Part shown: positions 2,361-55,100 of the stretch, piece after piece
Position numbering within the stretch: the stretch's first letter is position 1
How the letters are laid out: each line of letters begins with the position of its first letter
NCBI RefSeq assembly: GCF_032191835.1
Contig: NC_083227.1
Coordinates: forward strand, 40,486,001 to 40,550,000
Length of the DNA stretch: 64,000 nt
Reading direction: 5' to 3'
From: Heteronotia binoei
Taxonomy: Eukaryota
The notes under the pieces: model-generated
What the model saw: only the letters and a program-made list of their open reading frames with translations
Database searches by the model: none
What the model was told of the DNA's origin: nothing
Program-made: the position numbers and the translations under genes

Positions 2361-9249
<6,889 letters not shown>

Positions 9250-11379: not shown

Positions 11380-13036
11380 AAGCTGCAAAAAGGCATTTTT
11401 CTTCCTTTCCATGTTAAATGCCACACTTGCCCATAAACATTTCGTCTGCTTGTTGCTCAATTATAACACGCTCTGTAGTTAAGCATGGAAGTACTCCTTA
11501 ACAAAATCCAGGGTTAGAACAAAAGAGGAGTCAATTGCACCTTTAAGACCAACTTTGTTTTATTCAGAACGTAAGCTTTCGTGTGCATGCACACTTCTTC
11601 AGACGAGGAATGAGGTACAGTAAGCAGAACCACATATAGCTGGTGGGGTTTGGAACGCCAAGTGGTACAAAGTTAAAAACCCATAGCAGAAAGGTAAAAT
11701 TAATTAACAAAATCCAGGGTTGCAATTCCTACTATTTACACTGCGCATGCATTCAAATAAGCAGACCTCATCCAGGGCTGGGTTCGGATTACTGAGAAAA
11801 GGCATTAAGTTGACTGGCCCATCCAAGAAATATTGGTAAATTTCTGGCCAGGGGTGGGGAAAGCAAGTATAGGAGTGAGTCCTAAAAAGAGGCGAGAAGG
11901 CGTGCACATTTGCATTCATCTTTCGGGTTCGGAAGCAGCAAGTCGATGGAAAACTCTGACCGGATGATGAGAGGATAATGGAACAACGAACTAAGAACAA
12001 GGTATTCTGCTAGTGCGAAAAGAAGAGAAGCCAACGAACCTAAAACAAATTTGATTTTCCAAATGTGAGGCAAAAAGTTGACATTCAATAACCAAGCGCC
12101 GATTTCAAATGGATATTCCAGCCGGCAGCCGCCTTGCCCTATCTAGAGCTCCCTCTTCTGGCCACTGCAAGCCGGCTTCTGGGTAAGGAACGTCGGAGGC
12201 CACTTTTGTGAGGCGAGAATTTCCAAAAGCGCTTCGATCTCCTTTCTCCCGACTGGCGGAGTTAACAACGGAAAGGAGTCAGTCTGTTTGCTTCAAAAAA
12301 GACACGGGGCCCTGTCATTCGAAGGGAGCCAAGCCCAAGTCTTCTAACCTAACGTGTGTCTACTTTCTAGCAAAAGTTGTTAGCAGCCCTATGGATTCCA
12401 ACCCTTTTCCAACATCATTGAGCAAGGTGCCCCATTTGATTGAAAGGTTGTATGTTGCTTTAAAAAAAGCTTAGGTGTGCGTTTTTGAGATAATAGAATA
12501 TATAGGTGGTGGTGTGTTACAGTTAGTCCTCAGTCTTCGCTTTAAAACACTAACACATAACAATCTAAATCAACAATTAAAGATATAGATTCTTGGTGGC
12601 TTTTTATTCCAAAATAAATTGGTTAGTTTTCTTCAACTTCAATTCCAAAATAAAACAAAAACCTAGTAAGACCATAAAGACTGACGTTTATTTCAGCACG
12701 AACTTTCTTCATAAAGCAGAGGCCTCGCTGAATGCTCGCTTTGACTATTTGAAAATGGGGCGTCACGCGCCGCGCATGTCCTCTGCTTCCTCCATTCTGA
12801 AAAGTGAAGAACGACTTTTCCCGCCCAAATCACTCAAGCAGTTACAAATTCTCAAACTGAGTAAATAGAATCCTTCTGGGTTGAACATCTTCGGATAGGA
12901 CCAGACTGAAAACTCCAGTGCTGAAGTCCGTTTCCAAAGGCAAAAAAGGGGCGGGGAACTGTAGATGGACACGCGCCTCGGTGGTATATCTTGGACTTCG
13001 TGGCGCAGTTCGCAGCAGCATCTTGCAGACAGGAGG

Positions 13037-13618
13037 ATGGTAAATGGAAAGCAACTAGACGACTCCCTTCTATCAGAAGAAGGCGCTTCTGGAAGCGCAA
13101 CTCCGGCTTCTCCAGTACCCAAGAAGCGAGGAAGGATCTGCTCTTCCTACAAAGCAATGAAGCCGCCTTATTCGCTGTCCCAGCTTATTCTTCAGGCCTT
13201 TGAGACCTGCAGCGCCCGCAAAGGGCTCTCTCTGGCCGGCCTCAAGAAGCACCTCGCCGAGATTGGTTACAACGTACACAGGCACAACAGCCGCCTCAAG
13301 AGAGAGCTGAACAACTTGGTCTCCCATGGCTTGTTGACCCGTGTAAGCGGCACCAGCGGCGCTTCGGGCTCTTTCAGATTCAGTGGCCAGATGAAAAAAA
13401 CGGGCAAATCCGAGCCAGATAAAAAGGAAAAGGCGGTAGCAGCCAAGAAGTCGCCGAAGATGAACAGAGAACAAAAGAAGGCCCAGAAGCAGCAGCCGCC
13501 GATTAACAAATCAAAAAATCTGCAAAGGAAAAATTCTGGGGGAAAGAACCAACCTAATAACCACCCAAAGGGATCGAACAGGAATGCTTCGGGGGTGAAG
13601 GGAAGGAGAAGAAAATAA
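13037..13618 (+). CDS. Divergent intronless linker histone H1-like protein (193 aa from 13037; 217 aa if ATG 12965 is used)
   Basis: Winged-helix H15 domain PPYSLSQLILQAF...GLSLAGLKKHL...GYNV...LKRELNNLVSHGLL...GASGSFRF, followed by a basic tail. ATG 13037 has a strong Kozak context (aggATGG) and lies downstream of a GC box (about 12948-12956) and a TATA-like TATATC (12985). Confidence 0.9.
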   Translation: MVNGKQLDDSLLSEEGASGSATPASPVPKKRGRICSSYKAMKPPYSLSQLILQAFETCSARKGLSLAGLKKHLAEIGYNVHRHNSRLKRELNNLVSHGLLTRVSGTSGASGSFRFSGQMKKTGKSEPDKKEKAVAAKKSPKMNREQKKAQKQQPPINKSKNLQRKNSGGKNQPNNHPKGSNRNASGVKGRRRK

Positions 13619-15409: not shown

Positions 15410-18400
15410 CTATATTAATTTGAGATTAACATCTCTACCCACATAGAAGAAAGGAAACACTACCTCCCCGTTGAAAGAAGCCCTTTTCAGAATCACTTTC
15501 CCCTCTATGTAAAAGGCCACTATACCTGCTTCATAATCCAAAAATATCCCAATGATCCCAGGGCATATGGGAAGTGTGTGGGAATTATTTTCCAATGCCT
15601 GATGCCACCAGAGGCCCTCTTGCCAAATGCCCTCCTCTGGACCAAGCCTGAGATAGACCTTCCTGTCCACACGCTCAAGGGCCACCCCCACTGCCCACTC
15701 CCTCTGGTCTCTGTACTCCACCTCCCAGTAATGCTTCCCAGATAAAAACCCAGGGAGGCCCAGCAAAGCAGGAGTGCTACTGAATCGTTCCGGATTGTCC
15801 GGCACATTTTGGCATCTATTTCCCCATTCCACGTAAACCCTGTCATCTGGAGATATGATGAGCCACGGATACGCTGTGTTGGAATCAAAAATCACTTTGG
15901 CTGTGGGGCAGAAAGAGAGAAAACATTGCAGAGTTAGAGGCAGAATCAGATCCTTGGAGGGGAAGACTCGATCTAGCCAGGTTCTCTCACTGCAGAACTG
16001 ATTTAGGGCAGTATTGAACTAGGCTCCAACCTGCATGCTGTTCTAAGGCTGCACTTTGTCCTTTGTCCATCTGACATCTGTGCTTTTAACAGCGGGATGC
16101 CAATCCACCCACCACCGCCACCATACAGGGATGGAGGACAGTTTCCTTTATTGAATAAGTTGCAGATCGATGAAGATTTCCTCGCTCCCTTCATATGCAG
16201 CTGCTCTTTCTCCCTCACTACTCCTTATGCCTGAAGCTGCCCCACAGAACACCTTTGTGTTTCCTTCACGGGCTGGGGCAGTGGCTCAGGGGCAGAACAT
16301 TTGCTTTGCATGCAGAAGATCCTAGGTTCAGTCACCAGATAATGGATCAGGTAGTCAGTGATAGGAAAGACCCTGGAAAGTCCATGCCATCCTAAGTGTT
16401 CTCAATAGACCAAGGAAGCTTCATGTGTTCATCCCTTCTCAAAACCCATGAAGACTGGTGCAATCCCTGGGTCTCCCTTCATCTCCCCTTTTTCTACTGA
16501 AACAAAGCCTAAGCACATGCAACTGAAGCGAAGGCATATAAGCCCCCCCCCCTTTCCTTGCTTTCCTCTCTGTGACTGTGTCCCTTCTAAGCTCTGGCAG
16601 CAGCCTGCCTAGTACTCCATAAAGCGCCACACCTGGAGATGGCACCATATAAATAGCGCTTTCACATTTTTAGCTCTCCAAGGAGCTCAGGGCAACGTAC
16701 AGGGCTCTCCCTTTCTCCATTTTATTCACACATCACTGTGAGGTAGATTAGGCTCATGACCGGTCCCATTAAGTTTTGTAGAAGAATGGGGATTTCAGCT
16801 CAAGTCTCCGAGGTCCTGCATTCTTACCACACTAGCTAAACAGAGGAATTATGGTGTCAATAGTGTAACTTTCTCCTTGGGAAGTTTCTACTGTTGAATT
16901 TCTGCCTTGTTCAGTATAATAACCGTTTCAGTAAGAAGGGGACAGCTCGGCTCCTGGGGGATGGAAGATGGGGAATTAAAATACTCTTCTGTGTGAACTG
17001 AAGGAAACCTGGGCCGTTTTCCCACTTAGCGTTTGCTCCCCTTATTCCGCGGCGCAATTATGTCTGGATCATTTTTCTCGTTTTCCCACTAGTGACTCTT
17101 TGCGGAGTCGCCTTCCCTGAAGCCCCGGCTCAAATCGTTTTCCCACTGGCATCGACTTGAGTTCGATGCCCTGTCAATCATTTTTTTTTTTAAGCGCAAG
17201 TCTGGTTGCGTAATGACGTACTAACGTACTAAGGTAACATCGAGCTGTTCCCTCCCCTTCTTTTCGTGGACAAACCGCATCACGTGTGCTGCTGCTGCTT
17301 ATGGATTGGCTGCAGCTGTAGAATCCTCCACAGCCCTTTATTTATTAACAGAAGCATTCACAGTAGAGAATCCTAGCACTATATTCCCCCCCCAAATTCT
17401 GAAGTTGCGAAATATCGCAATAACGAAGAGAGAGAAATCGAGGGGTTTGTGTGTGTGTGTGTGTGTGTGTGTGGCAGCTTCTTCCCTTCGCTCCCTCCCG
17501 GGTGGCGAAGCTGGGATTTCCTCCGCTCTCTTTCCCCTCTCCGGCTGGCGCTTGCAACGGAGGACCTGACTGATTCCTGCTGCCAGAGCTCCCCCCCCCC
17601 GCCCCATTCTCTCCTTCCCCTTCTGTGGCGGGTGTGAAGAGCGAGCTCCGTCTATTTTCTAACCGAGCGGAATGTAGCCAGGGAGAAGAATGCAGGACTC
17701 CAACTTCCCATTTTATACATGGCGATTTTGTGCAGGTCCAGAAATCCTGGTGGCACAGCTGAGGGAGGCATTCCCTTTTTAAAACACACACACATGAACG
17801 CTTTGGCCCGCACCGGCACTAGATTCCCCCCCCCCAACAATGGTCGTTTTCGCATTATCGAGATAACGCAACAGCGAAATTACGCAACTAAAGTCAATAA
17901 TAATTTAAAAAAATTCTAGCGAAACCAATTGAAGTGGCAATTGAGGCTATTCCAGGAGGGTTTTTTTTTTCCTTTGTTAATTTCGAAATATCGCTATTAC
18001 GCAAAACTGTGAAGTTTAAAAAAAAAATGGCCGCGCCGGCACTTCGGGGAAGCGCCGCGAAAGGCTGATGATTGGCCAAGGGGGTGGATGGGGTGGGAGG
18101 ACGGAAAGGGAGAGGGTGCCGCCCACACAGCAGTCGATCCGGCGTGGATGGATTTCCCACTGCAAAGTCCGCGGAGTGGATCCGGCGTGGATCCGGAGGT
18201 TTTCAAAAACTCCGGCAGCATGCTGAAAAACATACTCCGGTGTAAAACCCCTGAAGCGCCAGAGCAAAGCGCGGCGCCGGAGCAAGAGGTGCGAAATCCA
18301 GGAAAAGATCCGGAGGTAAATGGGGCGCTACGCTGGAGCAAAGGCTAGTGCGAAAACGGCCCTGGTTAATGCAGCCCTGAGGCCATAGGTTGTGAACTTC

Positions 18401-52127: not shown

Positions 52128-55100
52128 TCAGGGACACAGTCTGAGCTGTGATCTCATTCCCACCCACAGCCAGGGATAGATGACCTCCCCTCCAAAAGAA
52201 ATTGATGAGAAAGTAAATATACAGGTATCCTGCTCTACATCAAAAAACGCTACCTGGCCTGCCTCATAGTCCAGACATACCTGGACTATTTGGTGCGCCT
52301 TGCTCAGGGGCAGAGGAGTTGGAGGGGAGGTCAGTGCTCGGTAATGATCAAATCCTAAATGCTCTAAAGCCCAGATTCCCTCTTCAGGCCGGAAGTCGAG
52401 CTTTTTCTTCTTCTTCACCGATCCTTTGGCCACGCCCACAGCCCAACATCCCCCTTCCACCACCAGTACCTCCCAGCAGTGTTTCCCAGAGCTAAACCCT
52501 TTGCTGCCTAGCACGCAGGGGTACACATTCATTGGGTCTCGGGATGAGGCACGTTTCTGGCGTGTATCCCCCAACTTCACGCTTTTCCCATTGTCGGACA
52601 GGATAAGGTAGGGGCCTGCTGTGTCCAGATCCAATGTCATAGCTTCTGCAACAAGACAGATGGGATCACAGGATTAGAGCCTGTCTCCACCACTAATCTA
52701 CTACTGGGTAGTGCCCTGACATATTGGAGCTACTGTAAATTGGAGGCTCTGGCCCAAGCCACACTTAATGCAAGAGAACCTGAACCTTTAAGGAAGAGTA
52801 CCACTCCTCTCAAAACATGCATAAAGGCATGCTGTTAAGCAACACCTCCACCAATCTAAGTGAAGCTGCCATTTATTGATCATCCAGCCCATTACTGCTT
52901 TCAGGCACCTGTTTAGTACATCCCCAGTTGCTCCCCTTATTTATTCTTTCATTTGCAAGTTAATTCTCAGCCTCACATACTGACAGGAGGTATAGGTTTC
53001 AGTGTGGGAATACCATTTGGGAGAATCTGATCCTTCTGCCAACATGAACACTTCTGATCTGTCTGACACCTACTGTCACAATTGCATACTTACCTTTTTC
53101 TTGATCTGTCTGCACACCTATTGTCACAGCTGCATCGACTCCTTTTTCTTGATGTGTCTGCACACCTATTGTCACAGTTGCATCGACTCCTTTTTCTTGA
53201 TCTGTCTGCACACCTATTGTCACAGCTGCATCGACTCCTTTTTCTTGATCTGTCTGCACACCTATTGTCACAGCTGCATCGACTCCTTTTTCTTGATCTG
53301 TCTGCACACCTATAGTCACAGTTGCATCCTCTCCTTTTCCTTGCAATTCAAGCGTCAAAATGTCTAAATAAGAGCAAAAGAAGAGAAAAAGTGCTGACTT
53401 CGTTCTACTTTGTTTGATATTTCATGTATCATCTCATTAACATACAAAAACAGTGAAGGGGGTGGAAACAGTCCAGGAGGAAGAGAATCCAGGTTTGAGG
53501 TCATGCCCATGACACCTAATACCCTAAATTCTGCAGTAAATTAACACATCAGAAATATTTTCTCAGTGACCACTGTTACAGGAGTTGCCCCCCTCCAGTT
53601 GCACATCCATAAACCTCTTCGGACATTTCCAAAGGAAGGGGGGACATACTCAAAAAGTAAGCCAAAGGAGGAGATGGGATGGTTACATTCAGCAAGCTAC
53701 TTTGGGCAGAAGCACACATTCAACCTTCATATTGAGTCCTCAAAGCCAGGGTCCAAGTAAGGCTGATAGGATGTGATTTCCAGAGCAGAAATAGACAGCA
53801 CTTAACCCTTCCTTCAGCTGCTGTAACTCCCAGGCATTTCAATTGTTTCTAGAACAATGATTTCATTACAAATTGGATAAGGAATGTGGGTTGAGGAAAG
53901 AGGACAAAACATGTCACAGAAAGAAGACAAAAGCTGTAGGACAAGGTATGGAACACCCTCCAGTTTCTCTCTCTGGAAACTCTGCCTTCATGCTTCTGCT
54001 TCACAAAGAAGGTGCATAGGTCAGGCAGAGGAGGAGAGAGGGAGAACAGGCCATTCTGCATAGTCCAGTTCTTCCAAAGTGACCATTTTTCCAGGTTCCT
54101 TTCATATCCTGCTAGGAGAACAATGCATATGCATTGTCCTTTGCCATCTACCACTTCCAAATATGGAAGTCAGTATATTTTCCATGTCTCCTTAAATATA
54201 ATTCCTACCAAGGAAGAGGAGAGGTAAGCTCTTTAGTTTGGACCATTTTTCTCTTCCTTGCTTACTAACCCTGCCACTCTAGGTGCAGGTATAACATAAG
54301 CACCTTTACCCTTTCAAAAAAATTACATTTCTGGAATCCAGATGAATCAAGCTTCCTGTTCCTTTAAACTTCCTTCTTCTTGTACAGACTAATAAGCAAG
54401 TGTTTACAGTGGTTTTCTTTTTTTCTTTTTGCATTTTTTAATGTGTGTGAGTGCACCTGAAAGTCATGGCAGCTTCTGGTGACTAACCCCTACTGGGGGC
54501 ATGGAATGTATTCAGAGAGGTGGCTGAATGAAGCCTGCCCCTGCCCTCCCGACTGCTGGTATTCCAACAAAGTTTCCCATCCAAGTACTTGCCAGAGTCG
54601 CCCTGCTTAGCATCTGAGATCTGACAAGACTGGGCTTGCCTGGACTATCCAGATCAGGACTTTCCAGTGGTCTTCAATATGTAAAATAACTGTCTGGCCC
54701 AGACATAAACATGGTCTTTTCAGCTAGTGTAACAGGTAGAATACAGAAATATACCCAAGAAATTCAGACACCAGTCAAAGAAGTGCAGTGAAATAGCCAA
54801 TACAAACTGTATTGGGGACTGTTAGCCATAAATTAGGTTTTCGATGCTGAAAGTCAGACATCAGGTTTTGAGGATTTTGTTATTATCTGACAGGTACCCG
54901 ATGAAAAGGACCACTGACTCCCAAAACCTTATATCCTGAAAGTCTTGGTCTCTTGAGGTGCTGAACTTGAATCTAAATGTTTAACATGATCCAAAGAGAT
55001 ATCAGATCTTCAGTTTAAGTTCCCTGATTAGCTACTGGAAGTGTTGCAGTATGCCCAGAAGGGCTTCAATGGATACAGCAGAGATTTTTCTGAGGCATGC

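Follow-up and report, generated by a model that had tools for sequence, protein, structure and literature searches.

Introduction

In Nup159, five QT motifs in a disordered stretch beside a coiled coil hold five Dyn2 dimers between two parallel chains, forming a rigid rod of ~20 nm (PMC4315244), and ASCIZ/ATMIN likewise carries many motifs for LC8 (DYNLL) joined by short linkers (PMC10046861; PMC5963919). Here we describe a candidate array of this kind in a TRIM gene of the gecko Heteronotia binoei, located in a stretch of 64,000 nucleotides (contig NC_083227.1, positions 40,486,001 to 40,550,000 of the forward strand, assembly GCF_032191835.1), which we call the window and to which all coordinates below refer. 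Like the Nup159 DID–Dyn2 system, the gecko protein has five consecutive QT-type motifs adjoining a coiled coil, but its host is, by domain composition, a TRIM E3 ligase with the array between the coiled coil and the PRY/SPRY domains, its units are near-identical recent duplicates, and binding is only predicted. Whereas the motifs of ASCIZ vary in sequence and spacing and tune LC8 gene transcription, those of the gecko are spaced uniformly by 8 residues.

At the level of the single motif, GKAP/DLGAP1 (LSIGIQVD and QSVGVQVE), nNOS (KDTGIQVD) and 53BP1 (NNIGIQTM) share with the gecko protein a non-TQT core of the type G-[IV]-Q-[TV]-[DE]; the GKAP and nNOS motifs, cited in a preliminary description of this DNA made from its letters alone, do appear in the published table of binders. 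Only conservative changes separate GKAP LSIGIQVD from the gecko VTIGVQTD, and the two motifs of 53BP1 have a spacing of 17 residues, close to the 16 of the gecko array. These proteins have single or double sites with measured binding, whereas the gecko motif is predicted.

The coiled coil of TRIM proteins is an antiparallel dimer onto which the L2 region folds back, so that both PRY/SPRY domains lie near the dyad, and ligases of the TRIM5/TRIM21 type depend on the spacing of these heads and on the assembly of dimers. The gecko protein shares the RING/B-box/coiled-coil/L2/PRY-SPRY architecture of pyrin/TRIM20 (4cg4, the best solved match) and TRIM72 (7xyz). What sets it apart from class-IV TRIMs is its tether, which in non-gecko orthologues measures 0–20 residues and has no QT motif. 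A full-text literature search found no paper on a TRIM with an LC8 array, in line with the preliminary description, which knew of none, and no TRIM is known to outsource its head geometry to the LC8 hub.

A tandem array of candidate LC8 motifs in a TRIM tether

Tandem Repeats Finder detected 6.0 copies of a 48-bp unit at positions 53055–53343 (score 438; 92% matches). The array is read from the minus strand, where the sole open reverse-strand frame encodes (EKGVDAAVTIGVQTDQ)n; its translation runs DILTLELQGKGEDATVTIGVQTDQ, then EKGVDAAVTIGVQTDQ twice, EKGVDATVTIGVQTHQ, EKGVDAAVTIGVQTDQ and EK. Five units are held by a single exon, exon 6 (53363..53094, minus strand; 270 nt, phase 1-1), which is bounded by the acceptor ttatttag|AC and the consensus donor AAAAAG|gtaagt, is confirmed by RNA at both junctions (see below) and corresponds to residues 296–385 of the annotated protein P0195. 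The preliminary description had placed the repeat at 53094–53333, with AxVTIGVQT(D/H) in each 16-aa unit; the reverse-strand translation agrees, and 53094 is the last exonic base. The exon encodes the tether that links the L2 helix (...LEKILKKFK) to the PRY domain (AMTLDLDTAGPYL); this tether has 90 residues in H. binoei, compared to ~17–20 in most squamates.

Each unit is made up of the 8-residue stretch VTIGVQTD, with Q at position 0, and the 8-residue linker QEKGVDAA, giving a period of 16 residues. On the minus strand, VTIGVQTD occupies 53296..53319 (motif 1), 53248..53271 (motif 2), 53200..53223 (motif 3) and 53104..53127 (motif 5), while motif 4 (53152..53175) reads VTIGVQTH, with H at +2. 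Units 2, 3 and 5 are the same at all 48 bases, so the H. binoei array is young or homogenized.

The motif resembles published LC8 binders

To score the motifs we rebuilt LC8Pred-like matrices, comparing binders with background and binders with non-binders, from 79 binders and 32 non-binders by isothermal titration calorimetry (ITC), all taken as 8-mers from −5 to +2 (PMC6607443, Table S4); the matrices use a generic background instead of DisProt and are not the authors' server. In leave-one-out testing the area under the receiver operating characteristic curve was 0.84. An LC8Pred-type check of this sort had been proposed in the preliminary description, and it came out in favour of the motif: VTIGVQTD scored 21.6, above 32 of the 32 non-binders and 81% of the binders (leave-one-out), and its nearest published binder was GKAP/DLGAP1 LSIGIQVD. 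VTIGVQTH of unit 4 scored 9.5, which lies in the non-binder range and below 90% of the published binders. The array therefore comprises four strong sites and one weak one, so that the five sites originally proposed are not of equal strength.

All five units present a V-Q-T anchor, with Q at 0, V at −1 and T at +1, which fits the LC8 anchor rule, and the flanks of VTIGVQTD follow LC8Pred logic in having no proline before the anchor, a hydrogen-bonding residue at −4 and a strand breaker at +2. VQT anchors are found in the ITC binders ZFPM1 (DKGVQTP), SON (VSVQTD) and MAST1 (QSVQTE) (PMC6607443). A random 8-mer reaches 21.6 with a P of about 5e-6, and in a six-frame translation of the whole window one unrelated 8-mer only did so. 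Because the five sites descend from one duplication, however, the chance argument counts once, per unit (about 8e-5), and this figure must be discounted further for the post-hoc choice of the motif class.

Complex prediction places the motif in the LC8 groove

Complex prediction was performed with bird DYNLL1 (P0191 residues 4–92) as the LC8 chain. This sequence was found by protein search with a 55-residue LC8 bait, and only database sequences were used thereafter. One LC8 dimer was modelled with two copies of P0195 residues 318–353, each copy containing two motifs. The predicted complex reached interaction prediction scores from aligned errors (ipSAE) of 0.79, 0.79 and 0.78, compared to 0.18, 0.01 and 0.02 for three controls, so that the complex prediction with a DYNLL1 dimer, suggested in the preliminary description, was in line with the proposal at 0.79 against a best control of 0.18. 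In calibration, 51 of 78 solved complexes reached the ipSAE mark, as did 2 of 108 mismatched pairs. The docking runs agreed in at least 89% of contacts, with a predicted local distance difference test score (pLDDT) of about 50 for the partner.

In the predicted interface, residues 340–351 (DAAVTIGVQTDQ) of both partner chains lie on β3, α2 and the opposite protomer of LC8, the docked copy being motif 3 (P0195 343–350). Q348 is positioned beside the glycine equivalent to LC8 G63, and it is the adjacency of Q to G63 that defines position 0 (PMC12057147). In the model, DAAVTIGVQTDQ is thus predicted to take the canonical LC8 groove in the canonical register. A full-length AlphaFold2 (AF2) model of the TRIM protein was set aside as too poor, having a mean pLDDT of 46.7 from an 11-sequence alignment.

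The motif is conserved among geckos and was amplified more than once

Orthologues were reached from the best B30.2 relative, which led to contig L001, then to the cluster with the full-length Gekko kuhli protein and, by a region search, to the gecko orthologues. One motif copy is present in Eublepharis (SLTIGVQTDQ), Paroedura (VVTIGVQTDE) and the species of contig L001 (SVTVGVQTDQ), two in Euleptes, where the unit is a different one of 21 residues, three in Gekko japonicus, which has a fourth unit with an 11-nt deletion, four in Gekko kuhli, where the units have diverged in DNA, and five in Heteronotia. A single motif is gecko-wide, being present in all gecko orthologues sampled, and it was amplified separately in Heteronotia, Gekko and Euleptes. 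The preliminary description had supposed that the array was gained by this TRIM; a private gain of the motif does not hold, given the single copy in all gecko orthologues sampled and the arrays of Gekko and Euleptes. We also considered that the motif was private to H. binoei and intronic elsewhere, which is refuted by NCBI models and DNA: in every gecko sampled (Paroedura, Eublepharis, Gekko and Euleptes) a single motif is part of the coding sequence. Outside geckos, the QT motif was absent from the orthologues of Pogona, Elgaria, Rhineura, a turtle and the tuatara. A phmmer search with the repeat exon, covering 1.84 billion cluster representatives, returned no TRIM, which reflects a blind spot of clustering at 50% and not absence.

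In G. japonicus, the 11-nt deletion of the fourth unit (L003:18962-19230) shifts the old exon tail out of frame, and the public model is truncated, without B30.2. In unit 3 of this species, AAAG|GTGAGG occupies the position that the GTAAGT donor has in H. binoei; used as a phase-1 donor, it would possibly rescue a two-motif product.

We compared at the codon level 15 motif instances for which DNA was available, from six geckos; the instances are non-independent, so no P value is given. From −5 to +2 the only replacements are conservative (one V/L, one T/S, two I/V, one V/M and one D/H), whereas amino acids vary freely at the five positions before and the three positions after this window of eight codons. 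Synonymous variation is found at 5 of the 8 codons, namely −4 (ACA/ACT/ACG/ACC), −2 (GGT/GGC), −1 (GTG/GTC/GTA), 0 (CAG/CAA) and +2 (GAT/GAC). The conserved positions coincide with the LC8 footprint (−5 to +2), GVQTD forms the exon's longest invariant block, and substitutions stay in the residue classes of published binders at each position, except for M at −1 and H at +2. This pattern of replacement and synonymous change indicates purifying selection specific to the motif. Since the change of GGT to GGC in Gekko removes the old GT, the conservation of these codons is not a splicing constraint. The preliminary proposal of candidate LC8 motifs is supported along three independent computational lines, namely motif scoring, the controlled complex prediction and codon conservation in six geckos.

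An array with the same period and core occurs in an unrelated protein, P0002 (659 aa; ENA metagenome contig, L006:8001-9980), which contains 8 or 9 units of 16 residues, NTTC[IV]GVQTDKEPEAD, scoring 14–19 in the rebuilt matrix. Unlike the gecko protein, P0002 is not a TRIM and has an unrelated architecture with transmembrane segments. The two arrays are likely convergent, and P0002 may be another LC8 array. Its neighbours are an ILEI-domain gene and a retroelement reverse transcriptase, so that the contig is probably animal DNA.

Origin of the motif and of the array

The G-V-Q codons of the motif have as their homologue the old 5′ splice site of squamates, seen in Elgaria as CCGTAG|GTGTGCAG, and the gecko coding sequence GTA GGT GTG CAG ACA GAC CAG ACG is the homologue of the Elgaria exon end, CCGTAG|GTGTGCAGGAAAATCAGACG. 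Because these codons are a former 5′ splice site, the motif appears to have been exonized in stem geckos, which would have happened when a downstream donor entered use. Such an origin applies only to the deeper squamate level, represented by Elgaria. A short direct repeat (CAAGAAAAAG / GATCAAGAAAAG-like) borders the 48-nt unit in geckos, and its presence would favour recurrent tandem duplication with the same borders.

In H. binoei, the exon is closed by AAG|GTAAGT, a new consensus donor that lies within the sixth unit. This unit (53053..53100, minus strand) is degenerate and frameshifted: its first 7 bases are exonic and are followed by the donor GTAAGT (53093–53088), and the loss of one G (GTGT-CAG) leaves the old exon tail out of frame. 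The ancestral gecko exon 6 tail (QKCSCWQKDQILPNGIPTLKPIPPV), with the old donor TCA|GTATGT, lies at 52981..53052 (minus strand); isoform X1 has it within an intron and the annotated isoform X2 makes use of it, and homologous coding tails are present in Paroedura, Eublepharis, G. kuhli and L001. The locus is an unusually clean instance of the birth of a linear motif, in which a splice site becomes a coding strand, then a conserved motif and then a multivalent array, with each step found in living species.

The ancestral squamate donor, phase-1 ATAG|GTGTGC, is kept in every unit of H. binoei (53118, 53166, 53214, 53262 and 53310, minus strand). Alternative choice among these cryptic donors could in principle give in-frame products with 0–4 complete motifs; no joint from 52645 to 53118 + 48n, as expected of cryptic-donor isoforms with fewer units, was listed in the low-depth RNA data.

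The host gene and its expression

When the reverse-strand exons of the window are spliced, they yield one open frame of 416 codons with canonical splice sites, whose translation is 100% identical to residues 142–557 of P0195, annotated at NCBI as 'E3 ubiquitin-protein ligase TRIM39-like isoform X1 [Heteronotia binoei]'. The Pfam domains of P0195 are RING (17–57), B-box (94–133), PRY (389–436) and SPRY (440–553). From its sequence, the host is a class-IV RING/B-box/coiled-coil/PRY-SPRY TRIM E3 ligase with all four modules in one product. The window covers exons 2–7, the RING/B-box exon 1 lying outside it. All of these exons are on the minus strand. The coiled coil starts in exon 2 (60962..61057, 96 nt; ag|GAACAAATC...GTATCTG|gtacgt), which is in frame in the spliced model, and continues in exon 3 (58288..58518, 231 nt), supported by its splice sites and by an RNA contig joining ~57945 to 58288. 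Exon 4 (57925..57947, 23 nt; cag|AATG...CAACAG|gtaagt) is followed by exon 5 (56301..56413, 113 nt), whose translation gives the L2 helix segment ending in ...NISLEKILKKFK. The last exon (52128..52645) encodes the PRY/SPRY (B30.2) region and the stop codon, and is identified by its open reading frame (ORF), its acceptor and the Pfam PRY and SPRY matches on P0195.

Expression was examined in four RNA runs (X1, X2, X4 and X5) aligned to 52560–58559, at low depth. The joint 52645|53094 is present in a contig of run X2, while a contig of run X1 and one read of run X4 place it at the sequence-identical position 53238; the joint 53363|56301 is present in a contig of run X2, in 2 reads of run X4 and in 3 reads of run X5. 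The joints 56413|57925 and ~57945|58288 are present likewise. The repeat exon is expressed, and the two joints that flank it show the repeat in transcripts, a point on which the preliminary description had made its proposal depend. No joint skipping the repeat exon was listed in the four runs, at a depth where minor isoforms may escape.

In RNA of other individuals (53217–53318), in-frame deletions of 3 nt give 45-nt units, with EKED in place of EKGVD; there are also, besides synonymous changes, V for I at −3 and, in unit 1, A for V at −5. The variants leave the Q-T core unchanged and every length variant is in frame, and the unit content of the array thus differs between individuals or lineages. 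Dispersed repeats at 54360–54760 and 55360–55760 are highly expressed and dominate RNA depth.

The annotated isoform X2 (P0197) has a single motif followed by the ancestral tail. Its production from this genome by canonical splicing (region 52981–53305, minus strand) is ruled out, because it would require, besides the old donor TCA|GTATGT at 52981, a 239-nt skip within the array for which 0 of the 14 equivalent placements is GT-AG or GC-AG; neither of its joints was seen in the four low-depth RNA runs. The isoform may come from a collapsed single-unit allele, from template switching by reverse transcriptase or from annotation repair.

A possible LC8 ladder and its alternatives

The reading of the array as a candidate LC8 docking site survives every computational test applied. 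We consider it reasonably probable that LC8 binds the tether and that the tether supports multivalent bridging; the ladder-and-stalk consequence, which we infer from this, is less likely than the binding and bridging themselves. The coiled-coil exons 2–3 and the L2 helix lie directly upstream of the array, as expected of a self-associating domain, and by analogy with other TRIMs the coiled coil presumably dimerizes. With five motifs, a 16-residue period and 8-residue linkers, the array falls among multivalent scaffolds, which have at least three motifs. Two tethers would exit the antiparallel coiled-coil dimer near its dyad, and because the tethers and the grooves of the LC8 dimer would be related by the same two-fold axis, parallel in-register bridging would be geometrically natural. 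Each LC8 (DYNLL) dimer would clamp one motif per chain, and a TRIM dimer might carry as many as four or five of them; the tethers, zipped in register, would form a 2:8 to 2:10 ladder like the Nup159–Dyn2 rod that would hold both PRY/SPRY heads on a stiff stalk of ~15–20 nm. The preliminary description likewise supposed that such a scaffold might stiffen or re-space the two B30.2 heads or promote assembly of a higher order, effects that are speculative. Single-motif orthologues would take one LC8 dimer, and one LC8 dimer per client pair is the commonest LC8–client arrangement. In ASCIZ constructs, linkers of 6–9 residues produced homogeneous in-register LC8 duplexes (PMC10046861); the gecko linkers, at 8 residues, fall in this class and so fit such duplexes.

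More tentatively, and with considerable doubt, we suggest that in a vertebrate TRIM ligase of the innate-immunity type a 5′ splice site of the gene itself became an LC8 docking motif, which was then amplified, giving a rigid, length-tunable stalk whose copy number (1–5) would be set by allele, lineage or donor choice. The array might also serve as a sponge for LC8 or stand guard against LC8-hijacking viruses. Were the array to bind LC8, geckos would represent a natural series with 0, 1, 2, 4 and 5 sites in which to follow the effects of tether length and stiffness. Animals share an essentially invariant LC8 binding groove, which makes the prediction open to cheap peptide tests with any vertebrate DYNLL1.

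Several points weigh against LC8 binding. The predictor was trained on many LC8–peptide structures, so that its passing score may reflect likeness and not binding, and by its own statement the complex predictor is uncalibrated for peptides and disordered chains. LC8Pred-type scoring is only ~78% accurate, many anchor-bearing peptides failing to bind, and three IQT peptides are non-binders, which makes non-TQT anchors the riskier class (PMC6607443). The motif of unit 4 is a poor one, isoform X2 is annotated with a single motif, and since units 2, 3 and 5 do not differ in DNA, the five sites of H. binoei count as a single evolutionary event. Mutation bias alone, owing to the direct repeat that borders the units, could explain the recurrent amplification. 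Finally, AF2 run on the repeat exon alone, as a single sequence, gave a β-meander of six strands, one per unit (best pLDDT 75, predicted template modelling score 0.61), and the motifs would be buried if this fold were real.

Some of these points can be accommodated by supposing that the array is a tolerated coding minisatellite, whose 48-nt unit multiplies in a permissive, flexible tether through slippage or unequal exchange, so that the match to LC8 is fortuitous and the protein is an ordinary TRIM with a longer leash. The complete identity of units 2, 3 and 5, which points to recent expansion, would be expected in this case, as would unit content that varies between individuals, a copy number of 1 to 5 among close relatives, the frameshifting 11-nt deletion in the fourth unit of G. 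japonicus, the single motif of the annotated isoform X2 and the mutation-prone direct-repeat borders; the motif, moreover, was picked post hoc among hundreds of linear-motif classes. A minisatellite does not readily account for an 8-residue window that is kept, with synonymous drift, across gecko families while its flanks are not, for a score over every published non-binder, for predicted docking in the canonical register or for RNA length variants that are all in frame, and we regard it as unlikely.

It is less probable still that the array is a self-structured, β-rich spacer, its units pairing within or between chains as a β-meander or cross-β structure and serving as a rigid spacer or for self-association without LC8. 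This is what the six-strand AF2 model of the exon depicts, and the full-length model, in spite of its poor quality, also has short strands at four of the five motifs (309–316, 326–333, 341–348 and 358–364). However, the five AF2 models of the exon disagree, with pLDDT ranging from 44 to 75, and the pLDDT of the array in the full-length run was 24–34. The same 8-mer is conserved in single-motif orthologues, which cannot form such a sheet, and the linkers are charged and contain glycine, as is typical of disordered LC8 clients. Conservation alone names no partner, and the TIGVQTD strand might instead pack in cis on the PRY/SPRY domains or the coiled coil, or be captured by another β-strand-binding protein, the array multiplying the contact; in single-copy orthologues the motif does lie a few to ~30 residues upstream of PRY. 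This too seems quite improbable, since the conservation spans exactly the LC8 footprint from −5 to +2, the substitutions remain within published-binder classes with the two exceptions given above, and unrelated-partner controls failed in complex prediction.

Other features of the window

A RACK1 (WD-repeat) exon lies at 6315–6701 (minus strand). RACK1 adjoins TRIM7, TRIM41 and TRIM52 at human 5q35, and the window looks like what we take to be the matching neighbourhood. A second PRY/SPRY last exon, at 15413–16018 (minus strand), comes from another TRIM or butyrophilin-like gene of the cluster. The 217-codon ORF at 12965–13615 (plus strand) encodes a linker-histone-like winged helix followed by a lysine-rich tail and is possibly an H1 variant, while a large exon at 35163–36386 (plus strand) encodes about ten C2H2 zinc fingers of a KZNF-type gene. 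Fragments of reverse-transcriptase ORFs from long interspersed nuclear elements are found at 33081–34430 and 62026–62778 (both plus strand) and at 23069–25790.

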